64,000 nt of DNA from Eutreptiella sp. 'Long Island Sound 2002' (Eukaryota; Protista; Euglenida), in contig OZ038378.1 in NCBI GenBank assembly GCA_964036045.1, positions 166,284,001-166,348,000 of the forward strand, read 5' to 3'. The notes below the pieces were generated by a model. That model was not told the DNA's origin, did no database searches, and worked only from the letters and a program-made list of their open reading frames with translations. This document shows positions 1 to 62,446 of this stretch, in pieces (the first letter of the stretch is position 1; each line of letters begins with the position of its first letter). Position numbers and translations under genes: made by a program.

Positions 1-15
1 AAACCCATCCGTCAA

Positions 16-4660: not shown

Positions 4661-5978
4661 GTTTGGTATTACTGTCGTAGCAAGGGTGCCCCACTTCTGG
4701 CAGCCATCATTGGTCCCTCGCCCTGATTTCCTACATATTCAATACTGGGGTACTAGGGACAAGGTGCTGGATCATACAGCAGCCAATTTATCTCAGTTGG
4801 AAGCAGTACAAGATGCATGCCGGGATCTCCTGCTGCTGACAAGGGTGCTTCTCCGCAACCAATTCCCACAGCTACACCACACCTACCTAAAGGGATCAGA
4901 AGACGAGAGGATGGATAATGAGCTATTTGCTGAGTTGTTGTTAGGATACAGTGCTAACTGATATTCTTCTAATCTAGTACAGATTTCAATGACAGACGGT
5001 CATAGGGAGTGGAGAAGGAGAACGTGGTTGGTGCGCAGGTAATCAGCCGGACACCGATAAAGGACCAAAGGATGTGAAGGGGTCGGGTACAGAGCACGTG
5101 CGGCGGTGAAGGTGTCTTTACACCACCTTGTTTAAAATGCCTTTTCACCTTTGATGGGCCGTCCAAAGAGAGGCAACGGCATTACGCACCACAAGTGAGC
5201 TAGAAAGGGCACTGCTTAAAGAGAGGAAGTGCACTGGAGGAGGATGATGCTGATTCCAATCAGGGAGGATCCAAGCCGTGCAAGCCCATACATGCGGGTG
5301 TGCGTTGATGACCCGGTAGCACCGATGCAGGGCGACACATGTATGGCACCCGTGAGTGCTCATCTCTTGAGAAGTGCAGCTTGATCATCTTGATACCTTG
5401 GTTCATGGAAACACTACAGTGGTGCAATGCGTGTTCCCGCATCAAATCCTTGAGTTTCCAGCCAATTGTACCTGTCTATCCTATGGCAATCACAGTCCAC
5501 ATGTATCGATGTATTGTGCCATGTGGCGCATCCCTTACCGGGGTAGCCCGGTGATGGTGGCGGTGATTAACCACGATGTGCTGCAATTTCCTCTGACATT
5601 ATGGTCAAATAAGAAACCTGTTGAGCCCGTTGACTTGGTGAATGGTGTGCAAACGATTGCCCAAGCTTCGCAAACCGGGGAGAGGGTGAGAGCATCAACT
5701 GTCCTGACGTCGTAACACAACAATGAGTTGATCCAAAATCATAGGAAAAAGGGGAAGACAGCAGTGGGACTATCCCAAGAGAGAGTCCGCTCTAACCGAT
5801 TGACCACTGCGCACGAAAGCATTTGAGCCTGGCAATGGGAACGCACACTGAACGTATGGTTTGTTGCAGCTGTAGCATACAGTCGGAGCTAGGAGTTGCA
5901 GCTCACAGTTTGTGCAAGAGTTGGATGGTGATTGTGGTCCACATTGGAACAAGGCTGTAGGACATATGCATACTGTAG

Positions 5979-5981
5979 TTC

Positions 5982-6038
<57 letters not shown>

Positions 6039-6171
6039 CCTTTTTCCTTCTTCGATTGGAAAAATTGTTTTCTACACTGTGAGTGGTTCTCAACAGCCCA
6101 ATCTGGTCTACCGGTGGAAGCAACAGAAATATTCTTGTGGCTCTCTTGTGGTTTCAGGTTCTTCCAAGGCC
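5979..6171 (+). promoter_or_regulatory. (CT)n polypyrimidine tract and candidate trans-splice acceptor AGs upstream of phytochrome copy 1
   Basis: A long (CT)n/pyrimidine run (5979-6052) is followed by ...TTTCAG and ...CCAAG just before GCCATGG (ATG 6172). This fits euglenozoan SL trans-splicing signals (inference). Confidence 0.6.
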
Positions 6172-9100
6172 ATGGCACCAGCCCACGAGGATGCATGTCG
6201 GTGGGCAGACGCTGTTTTGCTGTCCAGGCAGTACGAAACAATTTCGACTGCCAAAAGAGAAGCCTATCGACGGAATTCTTTGTCACTAGAAGATCACAAG
6301 CACACTTGTGCCCGAGAAATATCCACAAGCCAAGCGCTGTGCAAGGCCATGGCTATCTTTTGGTGATGGAGAGGGCCACGCTTTCGGTTACCCAAGTCAG
6401 TGCAAACGTCGTTGACCTGGGCTATGAAATCAACTCTCTCCTTGGCACGTCTTTGATGGATGTGATTGGAGCAACAGCCTTCGACAACATCCAGACGACA
6501 ATTGACATTCAAGAGTCCAAGCCAATGAGCAGTTTCCCTGTGGAATTCGGTGTTGGAGAACACAGAAAAACACTTGCAAGCTCCTTCCATGTGCGTGGCA
6601 CAAGTGCGTTTCTTGAGCTGGAACCTTACGTACCAGTCACTTCAAGAGGTGTTGATGCTGGAAATGTGCAAGTCCGATGCATGAGTCAGAAGCTGTTAAC
6701 GGTCGAAAGCAGTGTCGAAGGTTGCCAGCTCTTGACACAAAGTGTTCAGAGCACAACGGGGTTTGACCGGGTAATGGTCTACATGTTTCACCCTGATCAA
6801 CACGGTGAAGTCATTGCGGAGACCCTTCGACCTGATTCTGGGGTGGAGAGCCTCAAGGGGCTGCACTTCCCGGCACATGATATTCCGGAGCAGGCCAGGG
6901 CTTGCTTCGTCCGCAACATCTACTCACACATCCCCCATGTGAAGCATGACGAAATCCCGCTTGTCCCAGTCGATTGTCCCCACAGCATGGAACGTCCGGA
7001 CATGACGCTGGTGAGCCTTCGATCCGTGGCCCCGGGGTGCACCCAATACTACCTCAACCTGGGTATTCAAGCATCCTTAGTGGTGTCTCTAGTGGTTGAT
7101 GGCCAATTGTGGGGCTTGCTGATCTGCCATCATATGTCGCCAAAATTCGTCCCATTCTATGAAAGGGTTGCAGCCGCAATGGTCAGTGAAGTCTTGTCCC
7201 TGTTCATCAGCGTACAGCAGCGGTTGGAACTTGCGCGGCAGCAGGAAAGCGCTGGGCGGGCGCAGCGAAGAATGGTTCACTGCCTGAAGGAGACCCATGA
7301 CCCGCAGGCAGCATTCGTCGGCGAAAACGGGAATGTTTCTGATCTATTAAAATGTACAGGGGCCTGCTGTGTGATCGATGGTGTGGTGCATCGATTTGGC
7401 GTCACCCCTACTGAAGAGGATATTCTTGAGTTAGTGAGTTTTGCCTTGGAGCACTCTGGTGGGGTGCTGTGTTCCACAAATCTTCCGGATGTCTACCCCA
7501 ACGCAGAGAAGTTCAGTGAGCATGCAAGGGGTTGCTTGCTGCAGAGCGCGTCCACCACAACGAAAGACCTCAAGGAAGGTAGCTTAGTTTGCATCTGGTT
7601 TCGGGGATCCATTACCCGAAATGTATATTGGGCAGGTGACCCTGCCAGCAGCTTCATCCCCGGGGGCATGGTCCCCCGCTCATCGTTCAGGCCGTTCAGT
7701 CAAACAGAAACGCTCTCTGCCGTGCCATGGACACGGAGCGACGAGCATATAGTCAGCAACTTCGTGCGTGACATCAGCCTGCAACTGGCCGAAATCAAGT
7801 GCCAGCAGGCAGAGCACCGCCTGAGGCGAATGCAGATGAAGGATCAATTCATCGCCAACATCTCCCATGAGATTCGCACCCCTCTTTATGCCATTAACGG
7901 CATGGCCGAGGAATGCATAGAGGCGCCGCACCTTCCCAGTGACCTTCAGGAGCCTGTGGAGTTGATCCATGCCAGTGGCACGTCGCTGCTCAGTCTTCTG
8001 AACGACATCATCGATGTAAAGAAGTTAGAAGATGGGAAGCTGCAATTGGTGCCCCAAGATGTCAACGTTGTGCAATTGGCGCGTTTCTGCCTGAAGATGT
8101 TCAGCAAGCAATTGAAGGCCAAGGGCCTGCTTGGGAAGCTGATCTACACCCCCTCCCTGGAGCATACAACTCTCAGTATCGACAAGACGCGGCTGCAGCA
8201 GCTGTACGTCAACCTCATCTCCAATGCACTCAAGTTCACAAACACAGGCTCGATTACTGTGCGGCTAACGCACAGCCAAAGCCCGTCCGAGCTGACAGTG
8301 TCTGTTGAAGACACCGGCATTGGCATCAAGGACAGCGACCTCCCCAAGCTCTTTGACAAGTTTGAGCAGGTCGACACCTCCGAAAAGCGGGTGTTTCACG
8401 GGGCAGGCCTGGGGCTGTACATCGTGAAGCAGATCCTGGACCTCATGAATGGCAAGCTGGGGGTCCAATCGGAGTGGCAGAAGGGCTGTCAGTTCTGGTT
8501 CAAGGTCTGTGCCCCCTGCAGCTGTGAAAGCAACACCGCTTGGGCATCCCAGGAGCCATGCGAGGAAGTCGTCATCAAGCCATCGCCATCCCAAGACATG
8601 GAAGCATCCCGGGCCTCAATAACTGCCTTGGTGTCTGGATCCGAAAGCACAAGGTCGACGGTTGCCTGGGCGTCTGCCTCGAGATCCAGCTCGGAGCCCT
8701 CCTCGCTTGCTCGACATTGTGCTGATCCTCCACCGTGCCTGGCCCTTAAGCCGCTACCTCTCACGCCGGTCCCCAGTCGGGCCCGGCCGAGTCCCAAATC
8801 TGCATTCAAGCGGATGTTCCGAGCGGTGTTTTCGACGCGCAGCTCCGATTCCTGTTCAACGCCCTCTTCGCCTTCCGAGACGCTGGTGCCCCAGGCTTCG
8901 ACACCAATCTCTCCCTCAGCCCCTTCCAACATGGGCATGCGGAAGAAGGCCAAGCAGAGGGCGGCACCGGAACCGCCACGTGCGTCGATTCCCATCCAAG
9001 TACGTTCAAGGGGAGGCTTACGCCGAAGAATCCTCGTGGCAGAAGACAACCCTGTGTTGCAGAAGGTCACCTTATCGATGCTGTCGCCCGTGGCAGATTG

Positions 9101-9428
9101 CGTCATCGTCCCGGATGGCGAAGACGTGCTGGAGAAGTTGGGCGAGTCCACGGCGTATGCATTGATATTGATGGATTTGCAGATGCCTCGTCTGGATGGT
9201 GTCGAGACCACGAAAGCCGTGCGAGCCATTCCGCAGTGTGACCACATCCCCATTGTTGGCTTCACTGCCAGTTCCATCCAGAGCGAGTTGGATGCATGCA
9301 AAGCGGCGGGAATGATTGAGGTGCTCTCCAAAAACCTCCCCAGGGCACAGTTGCAATCGTTCGTCTCCAGGTACACACAGCCGGCACCGCAATCAGATGC
9401 TGTGTCGGAGCTATCTTCCCCAGCTTGA
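6172..9428 (+). pseudogene. Phytochrome-type hybrid histidine kinase, copy 1, with a 1-nt deletion near codon 49 (pseudogene or sequencing error)
   Basis: Same domains as 45327-48584. It reads GAGAAAT (6314-6320) where copy 2 reads GAGAAAAT, so the frame from ATG 6172 stops at 6366. The remainder is open in another frame to 9428. Confidence 0.8.
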
Positions 9429-9775
9429 TCCAAGCATGGCATTGCGAAATGCCTTGTTACCCTATCTCAACCGCCCCACCCCTTCCCCCGCTCGTCAGAG
9501 CAAGGAAGGCCATGGAAGGCAGGTGGGCACACGTCGCTTCTTTGCAGCCCCCCTGTGGTATGCCAGAAGCGTATCTTTACCTGCCTTGCATCCAAATTCG
9601 TCACAGCCTCCCATCATGCAGCGTGCGCGCTGTCAAGAGTGCGCACTACTGCTCTGTGGGTATGCAGCTTGGTTCAAAAAGTGAGTGTTCTTCATGGTGA
9701 TGCTGAGACTCCATCAGTCTCTGATGGTCACCACCCACCCCTGCCTACCCTGACTGTCCACGCCACCTCCGTTTC

Positions 9776-10451
9776 TGTCTGATCACTCTGTCTTCACACC
9801 TGCTGAACGACTGGGATCCTACTGCATTTGATGATACCTTCCAGGCATGATACCTCTGTTCTTCACCACCGCAGTGTAGGGGGTAGTGGGCAGTGGGGCT
9901 ACTTCTATACACCACCGCAGTGTAGGGGGTAGTGGGCAGTGGGTATCCTTCTACACACCACCGCAGTGTAGGGGGTAGTGGGCAGTGGGTATCCTTCTAC
10001 ACACCACCGCAGTGTAGGGGGTAGTGGGCAGTGGGTATCCTTGAGTACACTGCAGGTGTGATGTGGCGTAAACCTTGTTGTCTGATCACTCTGTCTTCAC
10101 ACCTGCTGGACGACTGGGATCCTACTGCATTTGATGATACCTTCCAGGCATGATACCTCTGTTCTTCACCACCGCAGTGTAGGGGGTAGTGGGCAGTGGG
10201 GCTACTTCTATACACCACCGCAGTGTAGGGGGTAGTGGGCAGTGGGTATCCTTCTACACACCACCGCAGTGTAGGGGGTAGTGGGCAGTGGGTATCCTTC
10301 TACACACCACCGCAGTGTAGGGGGTAGTGGGCAGTGGGTATCCTTGAGTACACTGCAGGTGTGATGTGGCGTAAACCTTGTTGTCTGATCACTCTGTCTT
10401 CACACCTGCTGGACGACTGGGATCCTACTGCATTTGATGATACCTTCCAGG
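9776..10451. repeat. Compound tandem array: 70-bp A x3 alternating with 233-bp M x2 (303-bp period); each M holds four 46-bp G-rich subunits
   Basis: A at 9776, 10079 and 10382. Subunit CACCACCGCAGTGTAGGGGGTAGTGGGCAGTGGG... at 9864, 9910, 9956, 10002, repeated 303 bp later. The duplicate block has a single A. Confidence 0.92.
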
Positions 10452-11070
10452 GAAAAATTTAGATTAGGACAAGATTGATGTGGACGAACCTCCCTCGTAC
10501 CAAACATTTCCTTCAATTTTAAGGATGCTATGTGCCAAAATGTGTGCACCGGACACCGGCTGCAGGGGGGATTTTCTGCGTGCTACATGCAGTGTGACTG
10601 TGCAACGCAGAGATGAGACGGGGTGTCAACTGACACTGTGTTCTCTGTCGAGACTCACTCAAGACTGACAATGCTCGCATCAGAAGACCGTACAATTCAT
10701 GGATGTACCATGTTCTGTATGCACAAGCGGCGCGCGCGAGGTGTGTGTATTGGGGTGATTTCGTGCACCTACCCACGTATTTGACAGTGAAGTGCATGTG
10801 TTTCGAAGCCGTAAAAGGTATTACCATTGCACATACTGCACTACGTCCCCTTACAGTTTCACCCATGTCTCTTTCATGGTTTCCTACGGGCATCACTGTG
10901 TTCCTGCCACTATCACATCCGTCTCCGAGTGTGGGCAGTACATGAGCATCGAGTATATGGCACAGTACTGGCAGCGCGGCTGTGCAGGGATCGCGACCTA
11001 GCAGATACGGGTAGGATGCAATTGGCGCCGACCACACCGTCCGGCGCAGTGGCCGCGGACGCTCAAGAAT

Positions 11071-30450: not shown

Positions 30451-31733
30451 AAGGGGGAAACAATCCTCGCATGGGCGATGGCTTGCGTGTCCCCTCTTTT
30501 ACTATAGTTGTCCCTGGCAACATGTCTGAGTGGGAAGACCCAAATGAGGAGGAGTTCCATGACGAGGAGAAGGTGGGATCGAGGCGCCCACGAGGATCAC
30601 GAGGCCCGGAGGGCAAACTGGCGCAGAAGGCGCGCACGGTGCGACGGAGGACTGAGAGAGCGGAATGACACCTCAATACAGCAAAGCCCAGATACCGGCT
30701 GGGGACGATGACCGAGTAGTCCTTCGAGCTAGTGCTGTGCCACCCAGTGCCAGAACGGGACCTCCACAACGCCTGGCAGACCTTGTGTGGTTGGATCACG
30801 CGCCGCGCCCCGGGCGCGGTATGCAATGGCACGAGTCGAGCCTGCTGAGAAGGGCAAAGACCAAACCCAACGTCACCTTTACCTTGTCCGCCACGAGCTG
30901 CGACTGGCGCCGGGAGTCAGCCTGGCGATGTCCTTCACCCACAATGCCACAGCCGTGCAAAGAGTCACCGTCAACGGCAAAGCTGACCTCATAAAGGATG
31001 TTTTCGAGCTTGTGAGGGACGATCTGGAACAAGAGGACTCCGACTGATGCGAGGCTGGCAAGGGGATGACTGTCACTCCTGCACAAGCCTTCCATGGCAT
31101 TCCAGAGTCAGAGTAAGGAAAGAGTAATGCTGCAGGGGGGGGGGGGGCGCATGTGTGCTGACAGCGCACCATTATGCCCAGGGTATATAAAGGGTAGCTC
31201 CCCTCGCATGTGCGATGGATGAGACAGCAGCGTCATGCTGCAGCGAACGAGCACGCCCACTTATATTGTCGCCACGAGAGACCCAGCGTGGCGTGGGGAG
31301 TCAGAGATGGACTACGGTGCCCTTCGGGCCTGGCGCGCCAGTGAAGGAGCAAGCATCAGTGTTGGTTTTGTGTTTGTGTATGTATGAGTTGTGGATGTCA
31401 GGAGGTAAGGGGGGAATCAAGGGATTCGCCTTTAGGCGAACCACGGGATTCACCCCATAATGCCACTCACATGCACTTTCACTATAGAATCTTTTAAAGA
31501 TTTTTGGGCCCGCCCACCCGCCCAGACACTTTACGCACACTTCAGTGACACCATAGATGACAATCATGGAGAAGTGTATCATAGAGCCACGGCACACAAG
31601 TCTACCGACGCCAGTGAAGGAGCAAGCATCAGTGTTGGTTTTGTGTTTGTGTATGTATGAGCTGTGGATGTCAGGAGGTAAGGGGGGAATCTTCCGCTTC
31701 CACTCGCGGACCGCGTATCACATGCACTCCGGG

Positions 31734-37069: not shown

Positions 37070-37700
37070 TGATCCCCCCACACACCTCCAGCATTTGCCA
37101 TTTGCTAGCACCATTTGTCTCAGCCCATTTTACATGGCACAAAGAACACGTCTATGATTGCTCATCCCTACTTGTTCCATGTCATGCAACACACCGCTTT
37201 GAGACTGGAAGGCGGGTTCAAAGCGAATGCCTGCGACCAGTTTTGAGCAATTGGCTCTTCATTGGCATGCATCGGTAACACCACCAGATGCATGCAAGCC
37301 ATGTTGTGGCACGGCATGGCTTGGGAGGGTGGCATCCCATGGCCAATGTCAACATTCCGCTGCTGTGGCTGTACAATAGTTGTTTGTCAATGGCCAATTG
37401 CACCAGCAAGTTCTGGACTCCGCCTTGCTTTACTGCCTCCATTGTCCTATGACAATCTGAGAAGCCGCTGCCGGTGATCCGTTGCGCTTTACGCTTGGAT
37501 GCATCTCCTGCCCAACATCAATCGGACCAGTCGCAATCGCAATCGTTGGCACTTTGATCAATGGCCAATTGCACCAGCAAGTTCTGGACTCCACCCTGCT
37601 TTAATGCCTCCAATGCCTCCATTGGCCCGTGTCAATCCAAGGTGTCAATCTACGGAGCCACTGATAGTAATCTGTTGTGCTTTACGCTTGGATGCATCAC
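37070..37700. repeat. Dispersed copy of the ~500-bp palindrome-rich satellite unit
   Basis: GATTGCTCATCCCTACTTG...GCAAGTTCTGGACTCC from 37156 matches the units at 49590-52180. Confidence 0.9.
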
Positions 37701-38480: not shown

Positions 38481-39134
38481 AATTGGCCTTTGCCCTCTAT
38501 AAAATTGCCCCCATCCCCCCCACACACACCTCCAGCATTCGCCATTTGCTGGTACTATTATCTCAGCCCATTTTGCATGGCACAAAGAACATGTCTATGA
38601 TTGCTTATCCACCCCCTCCCCCAACCCCATTGTCCTGCCCCACCCCTTGTCCTTCCCCAGGGGGGGGTGGAGGACCGTCACTTGGTCAACAAAATTTTTT
38701 TGTTGCAGCTCACTGTGTGGTTGTGTGGGTGACTGTGTTGTGAGGCACTGCCACTTGTATCCTTTGGCCTCTTGGCAGGAAATTTTGCTCACTTTCGCTG
38801 AAATGGAACTTGACCGCACAACCATGTTTACCCCTGGGACGAATGTAATGTTCATCCGCTCCACAGGGGAAACTGTTTTGATGCAGGTCGTGTGGAGTCG
38901 TTGGATGTTCAGAGCACGGTGATGCATATCGCCCCATCTCTTATGAGCGTGCTGCCACTGCATTCTTTCGTTTTGCAGTGCAATTTCTGTGCGTGAAAAT
39001 GTGCATGTATGGTGGTAGTGCGGTTCAGGTGCGGTTCAGAGCGGGAGGTGGGGGACCGTCACTTGGCAACCGTCCCCCAGGGGTTGGCGGGGGATGGTCT
39101 TCCCTCGGGTGGGCCCGGACAGGGGGGGGGGTGT

Positions 39135-41400
39135 ACGTGTTCCATGTCATGCAACACACCGCTTTGAGACTGGAAGGCGGGTTCAAAGCGAATGCCTGCG
39201 ACCAGTTTTGAGCAATTGGCTCTTCATTGGCATGCATCATAACACCACCAAATGCATGCAAGCCATGTTGTGGCACGGCATGGCTTGGGAGGGTGGCATC
39301 CCATGGCCAATGTCAACATGCCGCTGCTGTGGCTGGACAATAGTTGTTTGTCAATGGCCAATTGCACCAGCAAGTTCTGGACTCCGCCTTGCTTTACTGC
39401 CTCCATTGTCCTATGACAATCTGAGAAGCCGACGGTGAGCCGTGGCGCTTTCTGCTTGGATGCATCTCCTGCCCAACATCAATCGGACCAGTCGCAATCG
39501 CAATCGTTGGCACTTTGTCCTATGACAATCTGAGAAGCCACCCCCCCCCCCCCCCCCTCCCCCCACACACACCTCCAGCATTCGCCATTTGTTGGCACCA
39601 ATTATCTCCGCCCACAATCCAGTACTGACTGCTCCCCCCCTCCCCTTTGTCCCGTGAGGGTGCTGCCCGCGGATTGCACAGAGTGCACCAGGGCATGTGT
39701 GTTCGGCTGCATCCGTGAGCACGGATGCGCATGTGTGCCGCAAGTCACCACGTGATGATGATGATAAGTTGTCACAACTTGTCCATGGGCTGCTTCCCCA
39801 TTCTTTATCCACAAATTGATTGGTTTGAAATGGGGTTTAGCTGTATCAAAGGCGTTTGAAACTATTTACAATAATTGATAGCGGACCTGGAGCTGGGTTT
39901 GAGAAATGCCTGGGTGGATGTGGGTTGAACATAGTAGACCTGTTTTTGTGTTTTGAATGGGTGAGGCCCCCCAATTGGTGGACTAATGGTGTGTCAAAAG
40001 CCGGGTTGTCAACCTGACCCGGGGGCACAGAGTTTCTGTGCCCTAACTGGTGAGCGAAAATTGTGTCAAGGTCCTACATGGGCCGAGCAACCACCACGTG
40101 GGTCCCCAAGGGTGGTGCAATACCCTGATTGTTACCAAATAATCACCCAAATCCATCTCAAATGAGATACAAGGGTTGCAGAAAAAATCCAAAATTCGCA
40201 AATTTTTACATCCACTAAACGGCCTAAACAACACCAATTCTAGGGCTTTCGGGACCGCTCTGCTCAAGAACTGCCCCCTGGTTCCGCGGTCGAATTTTCC
40301 ACATCACCTTTTTTTGCCAGGGTAATGGGTTTTTCATGGTTCTGGTGGATGTGGGACAGCTATTCAGGTGTGCAGGACAACATTTCATGTGTGTTGCTAC
40401 TGGTCCTCCCATCAGGGGGGACCCTATCAGTCAGTCACAGTCGCACATACCCCTTAAACCCCTCCCCCCTGCTCTCGACCCCTTCCCCGAAGCAACCAGC
40501 CCCTGACAAGGAAACAAATAAAAGTCAGTTAAACACAGTTGAACATTAGATCCTTCCATGCACGTTGGAAGGCACACTACAGCCCAGTCAGCTGAGATTC
40601 AGTTCTTTGGTGTTCATTTGTCAGTGTGGTTAAGTGTGGGAAAGGAGAGGGTGCGCATGCTGTAGCGCAACGCGCCGGAACATTTTTTTTCCGCGGTACG
40701 GGGCTGCCCACGGTCATGCGCAAGAACCAACCCCTGGTTCCGCGGTCGAATTTTGGTGCGCATGAACCAACCCCTGGTTCCGCGGTCGAACATTGCCGGT
40801 TCCTGGACACGGGGGGGGGGGGGGGGCTTACCCCCATCTTGTAATCTCCCCCCCTTGCAATCCCCCCTGCCCCCCGGAGGGGGGAACGTCACTTTGACAT
40901 TTCTTCTGGAAACGGTTGGTTGTACTATGCTCTCCTGGAGGTGGTATGGGCGAAGGCTGCCCATGGGGTTTGGGGTGAGGGTCATGTGTTGGATGGAAAG
41001 TTGTACCTTACACGTGACATCTGCAAGCATGACCAGCTTTCCGATCAACTGAAGGTGCCTGTCAAGTCCAAGCCAGCCAAGCCAGCCACCAAAAGGGCTG
41101 GACACCAAGCTGCACAGCCTACCTCGTCTTCCAATCCTCAGCCTATCCCTGAATTGCCCACTGAGCATGTCCAGGAGTTTAAGGCTGTTTGGAGTCTAAA
41201 AAAGAAGTTTCGCACAGTGCCTGTGGAAAGGGCATGCACACAGAAGTAACATCATGGTTCAATGTGATTCACACTACCAGTGTTGTGCATGCACAGCTGC
41301 AGATTTGAAGTGTTACAGTTTGGTGGTGCAATCCCCCCGCCCCCCCTGGGGGGGCAACCTTCACTACATGGGGGGAGGGGGGTTGCAAGGGGGGTCCTGG
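39135..41400. repeat. Block duplicated at ~51905-53360 (satellite unit plus flanking sequence); this copy has extra sequence at ~40075-40825
   Basis: Colinear matches, e.g. CACGTGATGATGATGATAAGTTGTC (39751/52395) and GAAGGTGCCTGTCAAGTCC (41050/52998). Confidence 0.85.
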
Positions 41401-44666: not shown

Positions 44667-45125
44667 GGAAACACTACAGTGGTGCTATGTGTGTTCCCGT
44701 ATCAAATCGTTGAGTTTCTAGCCAATTGTGCCTGGGTATCCTCTGGCAATCACAGTCCACATGTATTGTGCCATGTGGCGCATCCCTTACCGGGGTAGCC
44801 CGGTGATTGCCCAAGCTTCGCAAACCGGGGAGAGGGTGAGCGCATCAACTGTCCTGACGTTGTAACACAACAATGAGTTGATCCAAAATCATAGGAAAAA
44901 GGGGAAGACAGCAGTGGGACTATCCCAAGAGAGAGTCCGCTCTAACCGATTGACCACTGCGCACGAAAGCATTTGAGCCTGGCAATGGGAACGCACACTG
45001 AACGTATGGTTTGTTGCAGCTGTAGCATACAGTCGGAGCTAGGAGTTGCAGCTCACAGTTTGTGCAAGAGTTGGATGGTGATTGTGGTCCACATTGGAAC
45101 AAGGCTGTAGGACATATGCATACCG

Positions 45126-45127
<2 letters not shown>

Positions 45128-45182
<55 letters not shown>

Positions 45183-45326
45183 TCCACTTTTTTCCTTCTT
45201 CGATTGGAAAAATTGTTTTCTACACTGTGAGTGGTTCTCAACAGCCCAATCTGGTCTACCGGTGGAACGTGGAAGCAACAGAAATATTCTTGTGGCTCTC
45301 GTGTGGTTTCAGGTTCTTCCAAGGCC
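45128..45326 (+). promoter_or_regulatory. (CT)n polypyrimidine tract and candidate trans-splice acceptors upstream of phytochrome copy 2
   Basis: (CT)n run at 45128-45200, then TTTCAG and CCAAG before GCCATGG (ATG 45327). Confidence 0.6.
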
Positions 45327-48300
45327 ATGGCACCAGCCCACGAGGATGCATGTCGGTGGGCAGACGCTGTTTTGCTGTCCAGGCAGTACGAAACAATTTC
45401 GACTGCCAAAAGAGAAGCCTATCGACGGAATTCTTTGTCACTAGAAGATCACAAGCACACTTGTGCCCGAGAAAATATCCACAAGCCAAGCGCTGTGCAA
45501 GGCCATGGCTATCTTTTGGTGATGGAGAGGGCCACGCTTTCGGTTACCCAAGTCAGTGCAAACGTCGTTGACCTGGGCTATGAAATCAACTCTCTCCTTG
45601 GCACGTCTTTGATGGATGTGATTGGAGCAACAGCCTTCGACAACATCCAGACGACAATTGACATTCAAGAGTCCAAGCCAATGAGCAGTTTCCCTGTGGA
45701 ATTCGGTGTTGGAGAACACAGAAAAACGTTTGCAAGCTCCTTCCATGTGCGTGGCACAAGTGCGTTTCTTGAGCTGGAACCTTACGTACCAGTCACTTCA
45801 AGAGGTGTTGATGCTGGAAATGTGCAAGTCCGATGCATGAGTCAGAAGCTGTTAACGGTCGAAAGCAGTGTCGAAGGTTGCCAGCTCTTGACACAAAGTG
45901 TTCAGAGCACAACGGGGTTTGACCGGGTAATGGTCTACATGTTTCACCCTGATCAACACGGTGAAGTCATTGCGGAGACCCTTCGACCTGATTCTGGGGT
46001 GGAGAGCCTCAAGGGGCTGCACTTCCCGGCACATGATATTCCGGAGCAGGCCAGGGCTTGCTTCGTCCGCAACATCTACTCACACATCCCCCATGTGAAG
46101 CATGACGAAATCCCGCTTGTCCCAGTCGATTGTCCCCACAGCATGGAACGTCCGGACATGACGCTGGTGAGCCTTCGATCCGTGGCCCCGGGGTGCACCC
46201 AATACTACCTCAACCTGGGTATTCAAGCATCCTTAGTGGTGTCTCTAGTGGTTGATGGCCAATTGTGGGGCTTGCTGATCTGCCATCATATGTCGCCAAA
46301 ATTTGTCCCATTCTATGAAAGGGTTGCAGCCGCAATGGTCAGTGAAGTCTTGTCCCTGTTCATCAGCGTACAGCAGCGGTTGGAACTTGCACGGCAGCAG
46401 GAAAGCGCTGGACGGGCGCAGCGAAGAATGGTTCACTGCCTGAAGGAGACCCATGACCCGCAGGCAGCATTCGCCGGCGAAAACGGGAATGTTTCTGATC
46501 TATTAAAATGTACAGGGGCCTGCTGTGTGATCGATGGTGTGGTGCATCGATTTGGCGTCACCCCTACTGATGAGGAGATTCTTGAGTTAGTGAGTTTTGC
46601 CTTGGAGCACTCTGGTGGGGTGCTGTGTTCCACAAATCTTCCGGATGTCTACCCCAACGCAGAGAAGTTCAGTGAGCATGCAAGGGGTTGCTTGCTGCAG
46701 AGTGCGTCCACCACAACGAAAGACCTCAAGGAAGGTAGCTTAGTTTGCATCTGGTTTCGGGGATACATTACCCGAAATGTATATTGGGCAGGTGACCCTG
46801 CCAGCAGCTTCATCCCCGGGGGCATGGTCCCCCGCTCATCGTTCAGGCCGTTCAGTCAAACAGAAACGCTCTCTGCCATGCCATGGACACAGAGCGACGA
46901 GCATATAGTCAGCAACTTCGTGCGTGACATCAACCTGCAACTGGCCGAAATCAAGTGCCAGCAGGCGGAGCACCGCCTGAGGCAAATGCAGATGAAGGAT
47001 CAATTCATCGCCAACATCTCCCATGAGATTCGCACCCCTCTTTATGCCATTAACGGCATGGCCGAGGAATGCATAGAGGCGCCGCACCTTCCCAGTGACC
47101 TTCAGGAGCCTGTGGAGTTGATCCATGCCAGTGGCACGTCGCTGCTCAGTCTTCTGAATGACATCATCGATGTAAAGAAGTTAGAAGATGGGAAGCTGCA
47201 ATTGGTGCCCCAAGATGTCAACGTTGTGCAATTGGCACGTTTCTGCCTGAAGATGTTCAGCAAGCAATTGAAGGCCAAGGGCCTGCTTGGGAAGCTGATC
47301 TACACCCCCTCCCTGGAGCATACAACTCTCAGTATCGACAAGACGCGGCTGCAGCAGCTGTACGTCAACCTCATCTCCAATGCACTCAAGTTCACAAACA
47401 CAGGCTCGATTACTGTGCGGCTAACGCACAGCCAAAGCCCGTCCGAGCTGACAGTGTCTGTTGAAGACACCGGCATTGGCATCAAGGACAGCGACCTCCC
47501 CAAGCTCTTTGACAAGTTTGAGCAGGTCGACACCTCCGATAAGCGGGTGTTTCACGGGGCAGGCCTGGGGCTGTACATCGTGAAGCAGATCCTGGACCTC
47601 ATGAATGGCAAGCTGGGGGTCCAATCGGAGTGGCAGAAGGGCTGTCAGTTCTGGTTCAAGGTCTGTGCCCCCTGCAGCTGTGAAAGCAACACCGCTTGGG
47701 CATCCCAGGAGCCATGCGAGGAAGTCGTCATCAAGCCCTCGCCATCCCAAGACATGGAAGCATCCCGGGCCTCAACAACTGCCTTGGTGTCTGGATCCGA
47801 AAGCACAAGGTCGACGGTTGCCTGGGCGTCTGCCTCGAGATCCAGCTCGGAGCCCTCCTCGCTTGCTCGACATTGTGCTGATCCTCCACCGCGCCTGGCC
47901 CTTAAGCCGCTACCTCTCACGCCGGTCCCCAGTCGGGCCCGGCCGAGTCCCAAATCTGCATTCAAGCGGATGTTCCGAGCGGTGTTTTCGACGCGCAGCT
48001 CCGATTCCTGTTCAACGCCCTCTTCGCCTTCCGAGACGCCGGTGCCCCAGGCTTCGACACCAATCTCTCCCTCAGCCCCTTCCAACATGGGCATGCGGAA
48101 GAAGGCCAAGCAGAGGGCGGCACCGGAACCGCCACGTGCGTCGATTCCCATCCAAGTACGTTCAAGGGGAGGCTTACGCCGAAGAATCCTCGTGGCAGAA
48201 GACAACCCTGTGTTGCAGAAGGTCACCTTATCGATGCTGTCGCCCGTGGCAGATTGCGTCATCGTCCCGGATGGCGAAGACGTGCTGGAGAAGTTGGGCG

Positions 48301-48584
48301 AGTCCACGGCGTATGCATTGATATTGATGGATTTGCAGATGCCTCGTCTGGATGGTGTCGAGACCACGAAAGCCGTGCGAGCCATTCCGCAGTGTGACCA
48401 CATCCCCATTGTTGGCTTCACTGCCAGTTCCATCCAGAGCGAGTTGGAGACATGCAAAGCGGCGGGAATGATTGAGGTGCTCTCCAAAAACCTCCCCAGG
48501 GCACAGTTGCAATCGTTCGTCTCCAGGTACACACAGCCGGCACCGCAATCAGATGCTGTGTCGGAGCTATCTTCCCCAGCTTGA
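45327..48584 (+). CDS. Phytochrome-type hybrid sensor histidine kinase (PAS-GAF-PHY-HisKA-HATPase-REC), 1085 aa, intronless
   Basis: Photosensory core: 'TCARENIHKPSAVQGHG' (Cys46), 'TGFDRVMVYMF..DQHGEVIAE', 'GLHFPAHDIPEQAR', 'LWGLLICHH', 'WAGDP', 'PRSSF'. HisKA 'ISHEIRTPL'; N box 'NLISNALKFT'; G1 'EDTGIGI'; G2 'GAGLGLYI'. REC 'VAEDN..ILMDLQMP.LDG..FTA..K'. Confidence 0.95.
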   Translation: MAPAHEDACRWADAVLLSRQYETISTAKREAYRRNSLSLEDHKHTCARENIHKPSAVQGHGYLLVMERATLSVTQVSANVVDLGYEINSLLGTSLMDVIGATAFDNIQTTIDIQESKPMSSFPVEFGVGEHRKTFASSFHVRGTSAFLELEPYVPVTSRGVDAGNVQVRCMSQKLLTVESSVEGCQLLTQSVQSTTGFDRVMVYMFHPDQHGEVIAETLRPDSGVESLKGLHFPAHDIPEQARACFVRNIYSHIPHVKHDEIPLVPVDCPHSMERPDMTLVSLRSVAPGCTQYYLNLGIQASLVVSLVVDGQLWGLLICHHMSPKFVPFYERVAAAMVSEVLSLFISVQQRLELARQQESAGRAQRRMVHCLKETHDPQAAFAGENGNVSDLLKCTGACCVIDGVVHRFGVTPTDEEILELVSFALEHSGGVLCSTNLPDVYPNAEKFSEHARGCLLQSASTTTKDLKEGSLVCIWFRGYITRNVYWAGDPASSFIPGGMVPRSSFRPFSQTETLSAMPWTQSDEHIVSNFVRDINLQLAEIKCQQAEHRLRQMQMKDQFIANISHEIRTPLYAINGMAEECIEAPHLPSDLQEPVELIHASGTSLLSLLNDIIDVKKLEDGKLQLVPQDVNVVQLARFCLKMFSKQLKAKGLLGKLIYTPSLEHTTLSIDKTRLQQLYVNLISNALKFTNTGSITVRLTHSQSPSELTVSVEDTGIGIKDSDLPKLFDKFEQVDTSDKRVFHGAGLGLYIVKQILDLMNGKLGVQSEWQKGCQFWFKVCAPCSCESNTAWASQEPCEEVVIKPSPSQDMEASRASTTALVSGSESTRSTVAWASASRSSSEPSSLARHCADPPPRLALKPLPLTPVPSRARPSPKSAFKRMFRAVFSTRSSDSCSTPSSPSETPVPQASTPISPSAPSNMGMRKKAKQRAAPEPPRASIPIQVRSRGGLRRRILVAEDNPVLQKVTLSMLSPVADCVIVPDGEDVLEKLGESTAYALILMDLQMPRLDGVETTKAVRAIPQCDHIPIVGFTASSIQSELETCKAAGMIEVLSKNLPRAQLQSFVSRYTQPAPQSDAVSELSSPA

Positions 48585-49589
48585 TCCAAGCATGGCATTG
48601 CGAAATGCCTTGTTACCCTATCTCACCCGCCCCACCCCTTCCCCCGCTCGTCAGAGCAAGGAAGGCCATGGAAGGCAGGTGGGCACACGTCGCTTCTTTG
48701 CAGCCCCCCTGTGGTATGCCAGAAGCGTATCTTTACCTGCCTTGCATCCAAATTCGTCACAGCCTCCCATCATGCAGCGTGCGCGCTGTCAAGAGTGCGC
48801 ACTACTGCTCTGTGGGTATGCAGCTTGGTTCAAAAAGTGAGTGTTCTTCATGGTGATGCTGAGACTCCATCAGTCTCTGATGGTCACCACCCACCCCTGC
48901 CTACCCTGACTGTCCACGCCACCTCCGTTTCTGTCTGATCACTCTGTCTTCACACCTGCTGAACGACTGGGATCCTACTGCATTTGATGATACCTTCCAG
49001 GGAAAAATTTAGATTAGGACAAGATTGATGTGGACGAACCTCCCTCGTACCAAACATTTCCTTCAATTTTAAGGATGCTATGTGCCAAAATGTGTGCACC
49101 GGACACCGGCTGCAGGGGGGATTTTCTGCGTGCTACATGCAGTGTGACTGTGCAACGCAGAGATGAGACGGGCTGTCAACTGACACTGTGTTCTCTGTCG
49201 AGACTCACTCAAGACTGACAATGCTCGCATCAGAAGACCGTACAATTCATGGATGTACCATGTTCTGTATGCACAAGCGGCGCGCACGAGGTGTGTGTAT
49301 TGGGGTGATTTCGTGCACCTACCCACGTATTTGACAGTGAAGTGCATGTGTTTCGAAGCTGTAAAAGGTATTACCATTGCACATACTGCACTACGTCCCC
49401 TTACAGTTTCACCCATGTCTCTTTCATGGCTTCCTACGGGCATCACTGTCACCTACATCCGATCAAATGGTGATAGGGTGCCTGCCACTGTCACCAAGAA
49501 ACAAAGGAACGACTTTTCCCCATAGTTTATTCGGGCAAGTAATCCCCAGATAAGAGTGCTCTTTTACATAGCGCAAAAAACTGGTCCCT

Positions 49590-52180
49590 GATTGCTCATC
49601 CCTACTTGTTGCATGTCATGCAACACACCACTTTGAGACTGGAAGGCGGGTTCAAAGCGAATGCCTGCGACCAGTTTTGAGCAATTGGCTCTTCATTGGC
49701 ATGCATCGGTAACACCACCAGATGCATGCAAGCCATGTTGTGGCACGGCATGGCTTGGGAGGGTGGCATCCCATGGCCAATGTCAACATGCCACTGCCGT
49801 GGCTGTACAATAGTTAGTTGTCAATGGCCAATTGCACCAGCAAGTTCTGGACTCCGCCCTGCTTTACTGCCTCCATTGTTCCCTGCCAATCCAATCCAAC
49901 CCGTCAATCTAGGGAGCCACTGACAGTATTCCGTTGTGCTTTACGCTTAGATGCATCTCCTGCCCAACACCAATCGGACCAGTCGCAATCGCAATCGTCG
50001 GCACTTTGATGTGTCCGCTGTCCGACGCCCCCCCCTCTCGCCCCACACACACCTCCAGCATTCGCCATTTGCTGGCACCAATTATCTCATCCCAGCAAGT
50101 TCTGGACTCCGCCCTGCTTTACTGCCTCCATTGTTCCCTGCCAATCCAAGGTGTCAATCTAGGGAGCCACTGACAGTATTCCGTTGTGCTTTACGCTTGG
50201 ATGCATCTCCTGCCCAACACCAATCGGACCAGTCGCAATCCCAATCATTGGCACTTTGATGTGTCCACTGTCCGACGCCCCCCCCCCCTCGCCCCACACA
50301 CACCTCCAGCATTCGCCATTTGCTGGCACCAATTATCTCAGCCCATTTTACATGGCACAAAGAACATGTCCATGATTGCTCATCCCTACTTGTTGCATGT
50401 CATGCAACACACGGCTTTGAGACTGGAAGGCGGGTTCAAAGCGAATGCCTGCGACCAGTTTTGAGCAATTGGCTCTTCATTGGCATGCATCGGTAACACC
50501 ACCAGATGCATGCAAGCCATGTTGTGGCACGGCATGGCTTGGGAGGGTGGCATCCCATGGCCAATGTCAACATGCCACTGCCGTGGCTGTAGAATAGTTA
50601 GTTGTCAATGGCCAATTGCACCAGCAAGTTCTGGACTCCGCCCTGCCTCCATTGTCCTATGACAATCTGAGAAGCCACTGCCGGTGGGCCGTGCTGCTTT
50701 ATTATTGGATGCATCTCCTGCCCAACACCAATCGGACCAGTCGCAATCGCAATCATTGGCACTTTGATGTGTCCACTGTCCGACACCCCCCCCTCTCCCC
50801 CCACACACACCTCCAGCATTCGCCATTTGCTGACACCAATTATCTCAGCCCATTTTACATGGCACAAAGAACACGTCTATGATTGCTCATCCCTACTTGT
50901 TCCATGTCATGCAACACACCGCTTTGAGACTGGAAGGCGGGTTCAAAGCGAATGCCTGCGACCAGTTTTGAGCAATTGGCTCTTCATTGGCATGCATCGG
51001 TAACACCACCAGATGCATGCAAGCCATGTTGTGGCACGGCATGGCTTGGGAGGGTGGCATCCCATGGCCAACGTCAACATGCCGCTATGGCCAATTGCAC
51101 CAGCAAGTTCTGGACTCCGCCCTGCTTTACTGCCTCCATTGTTCCCTGCCAATCCAAGGTGTCAATCTAGGGAGCCACTGACAGTATTCCGTTGTGGTTT
51201 ACGCTTGGATGCATCTCCTGCCCAACACCAATCGGACCAGTCGCAATCGCAATCATTGGCACTTTGATGTGTCCACTGTCCGACACCCCCCCCTCTCCCC
51301 CCACACACACCTCCAGCATTCGCCATTTGCTGGCACCAATTATCTCAGCCCATTTTACATGGCACAAAGAACACGTCTATGATTGCTCATCCCTACTTGT
51401 TGCATGTCATGCAACACACCGCTTTGAGACTGGAAGGCGGGTTCAAAGCGAATGCCTGCGACCAGTTTTGAGCAATTGGCTCTTCATTGGCATGCATCGG
51501 TAACACCACCAGATGCATGCAAGCCATGTTGTGGCACGGCATGGCTTGGGAGGGTGGCATCCCATGGCCAATGTCAACATGCCGCTGCTGTGGCTGTAGA
51601 ATAGTTAGTTGTCAATGGCCAATTGCACCAGCAAGTTCTGGACTCCGCCCTGCCTCCATTGTCCTATGACAATCTGAGAAGCCACTGCCGGTAAGCCGTG
51701 CCGCTTTACGCTTGGATGCATCTCCTGCCCAACACCAATCGGACCAGTCGCAATCGCAATCGTTGGCACTTTGATGTGTCCGCTGTCCGACACCCCCCCC
51801 TCTCCCCCCACACACACCTCCAGCATTCGCCATTTGCTGGTACCAATTATCTCAGCCCATTTTACATGGCACAAAGAACATGTCCATGATTGCTCATCCC
51901 TACTTGTTGCATGTCATGCAACACACGGCTTTGAGACTGGAAGGCGGGTTCAAAGCGAATGCCTGCGACCAGTTTTGAGCAATTGGCTCTTCATTGGCAT
52001 GCATCGGTAACACCACCAGATGCATGCAAGCCATGTTGTGGCACGGCATGGCTTGGGAGGGTGGCATCCCATGGCCAATGTCAACATGCCACTGCCGTGG
52101 CTGTACAATCAATGGCCAATTGCACCAGCAAGTTCTGGACTCCGCCCTGCTTTACTGCCTTCATTGTCCTATGTCAATCT
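49590..52180. repeat. Tandem array of a ~500-bp palindrome-rich unit (5 units)
   Basis: Units start with GATTGCTCATCCC at 49590, 50374, 50881, 51381 and 51888 (periods 784, 507, 500, 507; the first has an internal partial duplication). Confidence 0.95.
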
Positions 52181-61680: not shown

Positions 61681-62405
61681 CCGCCTCTAAAGCGAAAGTC
61701 TAAGCACCCCAAGTTTTAATGTTGTAGCTCTTCTAGATCAATAGCTTTTTTTTGGTGCATCCGCCAGTCCAGAGTTCGGCCCCACGTGGGGAGCGGAATC
61801 ATGGCAAAGCCACGGTGTGTAGTGGCTTGACATGCCGGTTTGTGTGAGGCGTTGACAAACAATCCCTCACATTTCCATTACTGGTACATTCAACCATCAG
61901 GGTATGCCTATTGGCCACGCGTCAGCATGTGACGCTGGGTACACATGCCCTCTCCCATCCTCTGCTCTGCACCGATTCTGCCGTCATGCCTTCACGTCTC
62001 TTGGCCTATCCCTGTCACTCTAAGCGAGCCCTCTCCTTATGTCCTCTCTCTCTCCGTCGTTCATTCAATCCCGTGACATCCCGTGTACAGTGCCTAGTCG
62101 TCTTCCTCATTTGCCCCATAGTATGGAGCGGGATCACAGGAACAAGGGGTTTTTATAGTCAACTGGTAGGGTCATCTCCACTGTTGTCAGGTCCACTCCA
62201 AAGCTTACATCCCACAACGCCTTCAGCGTTCTTAGATGGAACCCAACACCGAGGCCTTGTGCATAGGACTATGCAGCTTCCCATCACAGGCCAACACAGT
62301 ACGGTGAGCCCGGATGGTACGCCACAAAGTTCCAACCAGCTACGGGGGACATTGCCATGCGTTGCATTTTTTGCTGCCGAGAATGTAGAAAATGCATCCG
62401 CATGC

Positions 62406-62430
62406 ACTTTCTGAGAGTCTGTTTTTTTCG
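62406..62430 (+). other. Genomically integrated (relic) euglenid spliced leader
   Basis: ACTTTCTGAGAGTCTGTTTTTTTCG versus the Euglena SL as I recall it, ACTTTCTGAGTGTCTATTTTTTTTCG: two substitutions and one T fewer. It lies 16 nt before the ATG at 62447. Confidence 0.88.
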
Positions 62431-62446
62431 CCGCTTTCTTTGCCAA

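Follow-up and report, generated by a model that had tools for sequence, protein, structure and literature searches.

An expressed bacteriophytochrome-type hybrid histidine kinase with a non-canonical pocket in a euglenid, most probably Eutreptiella

The established euglenid photoreceptor is a BLUF adenylyl cyclase, and a long open reading frame on contig OZ038378.1 of Eutreptiella sp. 'Long Island Sound 2002' raises the question of whether a euglenid nucleus also carries a phytochrome, and of what origin. A review of March 2026 lists phytochromes in chlorophytes, glaucophytes, cryptophytes, ochrophytes, fungal relatives, and some algal viruses, with euglenids absent (PMC13150293), and a eukaryote-wide census records histidine kinases as absent from the sampled Euglenozoa, a sample confined to trypanosomatids (PMC6324907). 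The literature search turned up no published account of a phytochrome in a euglenid. We consider it probable, at roughly three chances in four, that the locus, located in a stretch of 64,000 nucleotides (hereafter the window), is an expressed, trans-spliced, intronless nuclear gene of a photosynthetic euglenid from marine or estuarine waters, most probably Eutreptiella, encoding a bacteriophytochrome-type hybrid kinase with a non-canonical pocket and belonging to a lineage-specific family.

The uninterrupted reading frame occupies 45231..48584 of the forward strand, with its first ATG at 45327 (Table 1), and an identical protein (P0121) is encoded on a 909-kb contig. A preliminary description had proposed a complete PAS-GAF-PHY-HisKA-HATPase-REC frame with intact kinase and receiver motifs, and both points are confirmed. 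The six Pfam domains all score above curated cut-offs, with PAS_2, GAF, and PHY in the order of the phytochrome superfamily, and the kinase retains H566 (in ISHEIRTPL), the N-box (NLISNALKFT), and the G1 (DTGIGI) and G2 (GAGLGL) boxes, while the receiver retains E958-D959, D1002, T1032, and K1054. These motifs place the protein in the hybrid histidine kinase class, with predicted catalysis. The best matches among solved structures are bacteriophytochromes (8u4x, 1.5e-86), and the AlphaFold2 model (mean pLDDT 89.8, pTM 0.88) has the predicted fold of a phytochrome photosensory module, its top Foldseek matches being the photosensory modules of DrBphP, Agp1, PsBphP, and RpBphP3 in the Pr state (TM 0.75-0.85, E about 1e-40).

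Table 1 Features of the phytochrome locus and of its duplicate in the window.
Feature	Position	Strand	Basis or remark
Segmental-duplication unit, copy A	5655..10899	+	extra ~537-bp segment at 9846-10381 (blastn)
Copy A of gene	6172..9428	+	1-nt deletion in A4 run after 6316 (= 45472, codon 49)
Segmental-duplication unit, copy B	44805..49449	+	blastn 99.0% identity to 5655-9845 and 10382-10899
(CT)n / polypyrimidine tract, 5' of gene	about 45129..45202	+	read directly from sequence
AG trans-splice acceptor; spliced leader joined to 45313	45311..45312	+	transcript contig L003 vs genome
5' UTR, 14 nt	45313..45326	+	first AUG in spliced mRNA = 45327
Phytochrome hybrid histidine kinase CDS, copy B	45327..48584	+	1085 aa plus stop, intronless
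PAS_2, aa 46-152	45462..45782	+	Pfam, 53.1 bits vs cut-off 21.4
Cys46 codon, candidate biliverdin-binding Cys at BphP N-terminal position	45462..45464	+	alignment
GAF, aa 185-330, with DIP motif D237-I238-P239	45879..46316	+	Pfam, 50.1 bits vs 22.4
Ser252 codon, at position of bacterial invariant Arg	46080..46082	+	alignment
Cys290 codon, in place of near-invariant GAF His	46194..46196	+	alignment
PHY, aa 363-528, tongue motifs W487-A-G489 and P502-R-S-S-F506	46413..46910	+	Pfam, 88.9 vs 27
HisKA, aa 556-622; phospho-acceptor His566 codon 47022-47024	46992..47192	+	Pfam
HATPase_c, aa 671-779, with N, G1, G2 boxes	47337..47663	+	Pfam, motif reading
Ser/Pro-rich low-complexity linker, aa 786-950	47682..48176	+	protein sequence
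Response_reg (REC), aa 954-1063; phospho-acceptor Asp1002 codon 48330-48332	48186..48515	+	Pfam
3' UTR, at least to L003 end	48585..49753	+	L003 colinearity

The RNA evidence, which consists throughout of assembled contigs, not raw reads, links this frame to euglenid mRNA processing. A public contig (L003) is 99.98% identical to the window and colinear with it over 4.4 kb to 49753, in agreement with the earlier reading of the gene as intronless. Its 5' end, GTCTATTTTTTTTCG, corresponds to the final 15 nt of the euglenid spliced leader (SL) ACTTTCTGAGTGTCTATTTTTTTTCG (taken from PMC6242988) and continues as GTTCTTCCAAGGCCATGG, where the genome has tggtttcag followed by gttcttccaaggccatgg. An SL-capped transcript had been predicted at 45300-45330, which is where the leader is joined. 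A (CT)n tract with AG acceptors had been pointed out as well; both are present and one AG is used, the tract itself, at about 45129-45183, lying roughly 125 nt upstream of it. A dispersed repeat also matches the final ~190 nt of L003. The SL on L003 is the reason for treating the JGI contigs as RNA-derived. Coverage in the RNA-type runs X3, X4, and X5 starts at about 45.42 kb with none at 44.7-45.3 kb, an interval present in the DNA-like run X1; a DNA run spans the gene and its flanks on either side without a break, and no joint was seen in the gene region in any run, 45122-45193 being skipped as repeat ((CT)n region). An SL joined at a genomic AG, on a colinear contig free of introns, indicates that the gene is nuclear, euglenid, trans-spliced, and expressed, which bears out the central proposal of an intact bacteriophytochrome-type hybrid kinase in a euglenid nuclear genome. 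A transcript 95% identical to the gene exists in MMETSP, whose sole euglenophytes are Eutreptiella, and the gene is probably expressed in that genus; the sequence was also found in estuary metatranscriptomes.

Among the best named matches, the nearest relatives are bacterial BphP kinases, at no more than 35% identity. The domain order PAS_2-GAF-PHY-HisKA-HATPase_c(-REC) is that of bacterial BphP kinases and BphP-HK-REC hybrids (PsBphP 8u4x, RpBphP3 4r70, DrBphP, Agp1, and a Leptolyngbya ohadii hybrid), which share with the euglenid protein the DIP, WxG, and PRxSF motifs, the N-terminal bilin Cys, and the fold. Unlike these proteins, the euglenid one has a 165-aa Ser/Pro linker before REC, two pocket replacements described below, and an SL trans-spliced, eukaryotic nuclear gene. 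The gene is part of a family that counts roughly 20 loci, all in one genome, and forms its own clade with 100% support (LG+C20 and FastTree), its stem measuring 0.83 substitutions per site in a tree with bacterial phytochromes; on this tree the family arose once. A horizontal transfer from bacteria is plausible, and no particular donor stands out in the tree.

The family might instead have a common ancestor with the PAS-GAF-PHY-HK-REC phytochromes of fungi and stramenopiles, which bind biliverdin; it would then go back to vertical descent, or to transfer between eukaryotes or by viruses, with no separate direct acquisition from bacteria. The tree has no supported bacterial sister group (adjacent nodes 43 and 9), diatom and fungal phytochromes have the same architecture and N-terminal Cys (PMC13150293), and one published account describes euglenid genomes as mosaics of eukaryote-to-eukaryote transfers (PMC3101172). 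DPH and Fph are eukaryotic and bacterial-like, bind biliverdin at an N-terminal Cys of the PAS region, and have histidine kinase and receiver outputs (PMC13150293), features with counterparts in the euglenid protein, where biliverdin binding is predicted. Nevertheless, no fungal or diatom phytochrome is named among the best 120 matches, with the photosensory module or the full length, or among the 150 best representatives, which is weak evidence against shared ancestry, and the viral contigs scanned contain nothing closer than 30% identity. DPHs are reported without structural variation or spectral tuning (PMC13150293), whereas the euglenid protein has a remodelled pocket. We regard shared ancestry as a possible but rather unlikely origin.

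The chromophore region combines conserved and replaced residues. Cys46 in 'TCARENIHKPSAVQGHG' aligns with the Cys of 'NCADEPIQFPGAIQPHG', as expected from its earlier assignment to the bilin-Cys position of BphPs, and this column is Cys in 251 of the 254 bacterial modules, as it is in all family members possessing the N-terminus. The canonical GAF bilin site is Gly289. An N-terminal Cys in a CxxExIHxPxxxQxHG context without a canonical GAF Cys characterizes the protein, at the level of sequence, as bacteriophytochrome-type. The DIP motif, Tyr293, His320, Arg284, and both tongue motifs are also retained, the DIP Asp and the WxG and PRxSF motifs each being kept in at least 251 of the 254 bacterial modules. 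Two other positions differ. Cys290, whose register is fixed by ungapped anchors on either side (R284 and Y293/G298), replaces the GAF pocket His, which corresponds to His260 of DrBphP/Cph1 and is a near-invariant residue, not a homology criterion (bacterial modules: His 249/254, Cys 1/254). Four paralogs (P0006, P0137, P0283, and P0284) keep the His, most members having replaced it. Cys, Asn, and Ser occur at this position among the other paralogs. Ser252 occupies the position of what is presumably the propionate-contacting Arg222 of DrBphP, a column with Arg in all 254 bacterial modules and S/T/G in all family members. Both replacements, like the frameshifted second copy described below, are new relative to the preliminary description. 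As a rule, the His at the place of Cys290 is in contact with rings B and C of the bilin. With the His260 and Arg222 equivalents replaced, red/far-red sensing, which had been proposed for this protein, cannot be assumed and is doubtful; the replacements could impair chromophore protonation or binding, and absorption and photocycle probably differ from those of a canonical red/far-red phytochrome.

Taken further, these replacements could mean that photoreversible sensing has been lost, bilin binding or photoconversion being abolished and the kinase responding to redox or a thiol-reactive ligand, or signaling constitutively. The loss of the Arg family-wide and of the His in most members would fit, as would the absence of the H-box His, or of the whole output module, from several paralogs. 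However, the bilin Cys and the other pocket and tongue residues listed above are all kept, the confidently predicted fold has a Pr-like tongue, and DrBphP still binds biliverdin with its His260 substituted. Purifying selection on the photosensory module (omega 0.33), albeit with only moderate constraint, also argues against loss. Omega (dN/dS) is 0.34 overall, indicating a functional gene, 0.14 in the kinase core, and 0.64 in the Ser/Pro linker, where constraint is relaxed. Loss of sensing is conceivable, though we doubt it.

A second pocket Cys recalls the dual-cysteine bacteriophytochromes (DCBs), in which, we assume, the second Cys is the canonical bilin-binding site, immediately preceding the conserved His. 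The euglenid protein resembles DCBs in being a phytochrome, predicted to be knotted, that has one Cys near its N-terminus and another in the GAF pocket region, and a DCB structure (9jry) is among its structural matches. In contrast to DCBs, its canonical site is Gly289 and Cys290 replaces the His itself, one position downstream in the anchored register, and we reject its membership of that group. DCBs are reported to have their second Cys in the GAF domain (PMC11880981). Speculatively, and with low probability, Cys290 would bind the bilin reversibly through a second thioether (e.g. at C10) and, together with Cys46, support a two-cysteine photocycle that includes a violet- or blue-absorbing state, and paralogs with His, Cys, Asn, or Ser would cover different colors. 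If true, short-wavelength sensing would have evolved independently within a knotted BphP-type phytochrome of a euglenid, in keeping with the light fields of estuaries and the sea.

The window holds a second copy of the gene (copy A), 99% identical in nucleotides and frameshifted. From the ancestral ATG, copy A stops after 64 aa, and an out-of-frame ATG at 6195 gives a 1077-aa protein (P0001). The paralogs all stem from a single assembly, where their contigs span 0.1-4 Mb at 25-49x coverage. These copies bear on whether the absence of introns stems from retroposition of a processed mRNA and not from a prokaryotic origin. Retrocopies with fossil spliced leaders do occur in this genome, one of them at 62406 in the window. 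However, the 330 nt upstream of both copies and of four paralogs contain no SL-like remnant, the segmental duplication behind copies A and B took in about 520 bp of upstream sequence, and every paralog examined is a single ORF. An ancient retroposition with since-decayed traces may be compatible with these observations; we nonetheless hold a retrogene to be improbable.

Descent from the phytochrome of a green-algal, prasinophyte-like plastid donor is very improbable, as the preliminary description had argued. Euglenophyte plastids are of green-algal origin, and the euglenid PAS-GAF-PHY module is homologous to that of plant, streptophyte, and prasinophyte phytochromes and of Cph1. Plant-type phytochromes carry a PAS-PAS module, whereas the Pfam search found no PAS domains between PHY and HisKA of the euglenid protein, and both canonical plant and prasinophyte features, this module and a GAF Cys before the His, are absent. 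Cph1 scores 173 bits and plant PhyA/PhyB only 142-154, versus about 225 for BphPs; the PhyB alignment does not even include the PAS domain, and the nearest named relatives are exclusively bacterial. Some prasinophytes do have phytochromes with kinase and receiver (PMC13150293), but plant, streptophyte, and prasinophyte phytochromes and Cph1 bind PCB or phytochromobilin at a GAF Cys (PMC13150293), where the euglenid protein has Gly289 and an N-terminal Cys.

Bacterial contamination or a chimeric assembly unlinked to the euglenid flanks, which the bacterial nearest relatives, the lack of introns, and the metagenome-style contig names in the paralogs' public assembly might suggest, is effectively refuted by the SL on the transcript, joined at an AG found in the genomic sequence, by the position inside a 4.7-kb segmental duplication within a repeat- and retroelement-rich eukaryotic window, by host-like base composition (GC 0.549, window 0.550; GC3 0.635, neighboring ORFs 0.55-0.63), and by the continuous DNA coverage, with the Ser/Pro linker and the uniform coverage of the paralogs' contigs also against it.

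We return to a bacteriophytochrome-type euglenid gene, one recent copy in its lineage-specific family, which has been resident long enough to acquire host base composition and host mRNA processing. Its product, in which no hydrophobic N-terminal signal segment was found, is a predicted cytosolic, knotted PAS-GAF-PHY module fused to a full histidine kinase and a receiver. The bilin, made from heme and most likely biliverdin, would attach to Cys46, and its light-driven isomerization would refold the PHY tongue and change autophosphorylation of His566, from which phosphate would pass to Asp1002 and on to an HPt protein and a response regulator. Bilin binding, photoconversion, and kinase activity are here predicted from the protein sequence. 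Of the two-component system proposed earlier, the hybrid kinase and its receiver motifs are complete; searches located no HPt or response-regulator partner for it, and no source of bilin (heme oxygenase, bilin reductase). Unlike in bacterial locus L007, no heme-oxygenase gene adjoins the euglenid phytochrome.

With this expressed, multi-copy family in a euglenid, the supergroup Discoba joins the phytochrome-bearing lineages, and the unsettled history of multiple phytochrome acquisitions gains another independent case. The presence of its transcripts in estuary metatranscriptomes indicates that the receptor is in use in nature. At two near-invariant pocket positions the family also offers natural variants, usable for spectral-tuning tests. 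BphP-type modules underlie near-infrared fluorescent proteins and optogenetic tools, and a naturally remodelled pocket may therefore have practical value.

Copy B, the phytochrome gene in the second half of the window, lies in an uninterrupted open frame, and the product of its first ATG carries six Pfam domains, all well over the curated cut-offs (see table). Its top PDB matches are bacteriophytochromes (BphPs), with full-length PsBphP (8u4x) at 1.5e-86 and 294 bits and RpBphP photosensory modules at about 225 bits, compared with 173 bits for Cph1 and 142-154 bits for plant PhyA/PhyB. In the PDB alignments, Cys46 ('TCARENIHKPSAVQGHG') stands opposite the biliverdin-binding Cys of BphPs. The kinase residues are intact, namely His566 of the H-box, the N, G1, and G2 boxes, and Asp1002, Thr1032, and Lys1054 of the receiver. 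No hydrophobic N-terminal segment suggesting plastid or secretory targeting is present in the protein. The frame, the Pfam domains, and the pairing of Cys46 with the BphP Cys thus show that the preliminary description had the coordinates, the architecture, and the cysteine right. An antisense ORF over the linker and receiver region, mirrored in copy A, belongs to no Pfam family; most likely it is a shadow ORF arising from the GC-rich linker.

Positions of features in the window and of the domains of the copy B protein
Feature	Position	Strand	Remarks
Open frame of copy B	45231-48584	+	
Copy B, from first ATG	45327-48584	+	1085 aa
PAS_2	aa 46-152		Pfam
GAF	aa 185-330		Pfam
PHY	aa 363-528		Pfam
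HisKA	aa 556-622		Pfam
HATPase_c	aa 671-779		Pfam
Response_reg	aa 954-1063		Pfam
Antisense ORF	47645-48598	-	317 aa; in copy A at 8489-9442
Transcript L003 after the spliced leader	45313-49753		99.98% identity, one gap
Copy A	6172-9428	+	ATG-equivalent at 6172
Segmental duplication, first block	5655-9845 / 44805-49001		99.0% nucleotide identity
Segmental duplication, second block	10382-10899 / 48932-49449		
Segment in copy A 3' flank only	9846-10381		~537 bp
High-copy repeat in copy B 3' region	49012-49165		
~190-nt repeat	50346, 50853, 51353, 51860 (50346-52051); 37128-37319; 39134-39283		~507-bp spacing in the series of four
Tandem array	1-1800		10-bp period, ~149 registers, 74-87% identity
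Retroelement of the preliminary description	25949-31691		
ORF within the retroelement	28075-30450		791 aa; RVT_1, 6e-12
Degenerate spliced leader	62406-62430		
ORF containing the degenerate spliced leader	62357-63493		378 aa; no Pfam family

The public protein P0121, encoded on a 909-kb contig, is the exact copy B protein, and its 90% cluster includes several JGI contigs of transcript size and an MMETSP transcript. One of these JGI contigs, L003 (4456 nt), starts with GTCTATTTTTTTTCG and continues with GTTCTTCCAAGGCCATGG; its nucleotides 1-15 correspond to the 3'-terminal 15 nt of the euglenid spliced leader (SL), ACTTTCTGAGTGTCTATTTTTTTTCG (PMC6242988). The remainder follows the window from the position immediately 3' of an AG at 45311-45312. 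This junction and the colinearity beyond it show that the mRNA is SL trans-spliced, with a 5' UTR of 14 nt before the first AUG at 45327, that copy B has no introns, and that it is the expressed copy. The preliminary description had called the gene intronless and had named 45300-45330 as the place to look for an SL-capped transcript, and L003 bears it out on both points. Since L003 carries the euglenid SL, the expressing organism is a euglenid and not a bacterium, and bacterial contamination of the locus is rejected.

Near-identical sequence occurs in public runs of 11 studies, four of which are estuary metatranscriptomes. Over 44700-49300, three RNA-type runs give coverage from about 45.42 kb onward and none over the 600 nt upstream of that, and a DNA-like run covers the whole interval. 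Among the assembled contigs of these runs we found no joint across the interval and no SL-bearing 5' loose end; one 442-nt contig (45422-45863) shows zero differences to copy B across the frameshift site of copy A. The MMETSP euglenophyte transcriptomes come from two Eutreptiella isolates only (PMC6242988). This and the occurrence in estuaries make Eutreptiella, or a close relative, the likely source of the transcript. The GC content of copy B (0.549, GC3 0.635) matches that of the window (0.550) and of neighbouring ORFs, and a fossil SL, a reverse-transcriptase ORF, and plentiful repeats are consistent with a euglenid nuclear setting.

The fossil SL, ACTTTCTGAGAGTCTGTTTTTTTCG, is a degenerate euglenid SL just 5' of the ATG in its ORF, which fits a retrocopy; a scan of the window with the E. 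gracilis SL at up to 3 mismatches gave no match, the fossil differing at more positions. Rfam at gathering thresholds returned nothing in the window. The tandem array that opens the window coincides with high GC, strong GC skew, and a spurious 583-aa ORF. In the copy B 3' region, one segment has a depth of about 3900x in the DNA-like run, compared with about 40-80x outside it, and is therefore a very high-copy repeat; many contigs break there with loose ends. The ~190-nt repeat is 95-96% identical to the last 192 nt of L003.

Mapping of the window by blastn revealed a segmental duplication in two blocks, and with it a second phytochrome gene, copy A, that the preliminary description had missed. 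Copy A shares 99% nucleotide identity with copy B, from which it differs by 9 synonymous and 15 non-synonymous substitutions. It lacks 1 nt of an A4 run after 6316, equivalent to 45472 (codon 49), so that the frame from the ancestral ATG ends after 64 residues. The long copy A product in public gene calls (P0001) starts at an out-of-frame ATG at 6195, the only such start. In its assembled form, copy A is a pseudogene, though the missing nucleotide may instead be a homopolymer assembly error. Between the two duplication blocks, the copy A 3' flank holds a segment without counterpart in copy B. The 909-kb contig that encodes P0121 also carries a third copy (P0126), intact and 98% identical.

Copy B belongs to a large family. 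Its members all come from a single assembly (ERZ25074135), where they lie on contigs of 0.1-4 Mb with coverage of 25-49x. The P0002 type, 89% identical to copy B, is found at about seven places and is expressed (L004, and a separate loose end at 48567). The other paralogs include divergent full-length proteins (P0003, P0283, P0006), sensor-only proteins with no output module (P0004, P0005, P0137), and broken or split ones (P0139 with P0024, P0007, P0284, P0138). P0139 (PAS_2 only, 261 aa) and P0024 (PHY-HK-REC, 734 aa) are overlapping adjacent calls at L015:2001-4786 (ERZ25074135 ctg10965) and together form a single paralog that a frame break or an intron divides. P0003, P0007, and P0024 have lost the phospho-accepting His of the H-box, with IPTE, IPNE, and SLDT in place of ISHE (L006 and others), and retain the remaining kinase and receiver.

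We searched 1.84 billion representatives exhaustively with HMMER; below the family members, the hits level off at 28-35% identity. Word-indexed searches with the photosensory module and the full length agreed. The named neighbours from searches and cluster look-ups are all bacterial (Vampirovibrio, Caldimonas, Minicystis, Sorangium, Leptolyngbya, Terriglobales), as are the closest clusters of the ESM Atlas. Trees were built of 263 modules with FastTree and of 75 with IQ-TREE (LG+C20 PMSF), without fungal, diatom, cryptophyte, and prasinophyte sequences; in these the euglenid family is a single clade (support 100%) whose stem measures 0.83 substitutions per site, and it has no supported bacterial sister. 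The single clade on its long stem indicates one origin followed by expansion within the lineage, and the dS between paralogs (1.5-1.9), together with the host-like composition, indicates long residence in the genome. As for the route of entry, the 330 nt upstream of copy A, copy B, and four paralogs hold no fossil SL, which leaves a retrogene origin without support. A viral vector likewise lacks support, since the six loci found by scanning IMG/VR viral contigs, at 21-30% identity, are no closer than bacteria. Descent from the green plastid endosymbiont, already rejected in the preliminary description, is disfavoured by domain architecture, Cys position, and similarity scores.

One bacterial relative, P0251 (1326 aa, L007:2374-6981), has a heme-oxygenase gene directly upstream, the classic BphP operon arrangement; unlike this bacterial locus, none of the euglenid loci examined has an adjacent heme-oxygenase gene. 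The euglenid literature searched yielded nothing on heme oxygenase, bilin reductase, or HPt.

We compared the bilin pocket of copy B with that of 254 bacterial modules. The N-terminal Cys, the DIP motif, Arg284, Tyr293, His320, and both tongue motifs are kept. Nevertheless, the pocket is non-canonical, which the preliminary description had missed. Cys290 replaces a near-invariant His (249 of the 254 modules) at the position of His260 in DrBphP/Cph1, and Ser252 replaces an Arg present in all 254, with S, T, or G in every family member. Ungapped anchors on either side (R284; Y293/G298) place Cys290 at the His position, whereas Gly289 occupies the canonical GAF-Cys site. Among the paralogs, four keep the His, and others have Asn, Ser, or Phe. 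Cys290 and Ser252 may give the protein a spectrum and photocycle other than the red/far-red type assumed in the preliminary description; a second thioether leading to a short-wavelength state is possible but speculative. In dual-Cys bacteriophytochromes, as the class is understood here, the second Cys precedes the His, whereas Cys290 replaces it, and the copy B protein, judged by its sequence, would not be a member of that class.

Between copy B and its P0002 paralog, dN/dS is 0.34 overall, with 0.14 in the kinase core, 0.33 in the photosensory module, 0.37 in the receiver, and 0.64 in the Ser/Pro linker. The AlphaFold2 model from a 75-sequence alignment (pLDDT 89.8, pTM 0.88) shows short beta strands within the tongue, and its Foldseek matches are BphP photosensory modules in the Pr state (TM 0.75-0.85). 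Copy B most likely works as a BphP hybrid kinase, although beyond the domain assignments we infer every step. A bilin, probably biliverdin, would be bound on Cys46, its light-driven isomerisation would refold the tongue and alter autophosphorylation at His566, and the phosphate would pass via Asp1002 to partner HPt and response-regulator proteins.

Among known systems, bacterial BphP-HK(-REC) proteins come closest and share architecture, Cys position, and fold with copy B; copy B differs from them in its identity of at most 35%, its altered pocket, and its eukaryotic mRNA processing. Diatom and fungal phytochromes, compared here by description only, match copy B in architecture, reportedly bind biliverdin (PMC13150293), and may share ancestry with the euglenid family. 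Euglenids are absent from a 2026 review of microalgal phytochromes, which lists chlorophytes, glaucophytes, cryptophytes, and ochrophytes (PMC13150293), and likewise from Li et al. (2015) and from a census of histidine kinases across eukaryotes; in the Euglenozoa that the census sampled, trypanosomatids only, it found no histidine kinases (PMC6324907). No report of a phytochrome in euglenids or Eutreptiella came up in our literature search, although an earlier passing mention is possible, the MMETSP transcripts having long been public. The core of the preliminary description stands, in that copy B is an intact, BphP-type, nuclear, trans-spliced, and non-plant-type gene.
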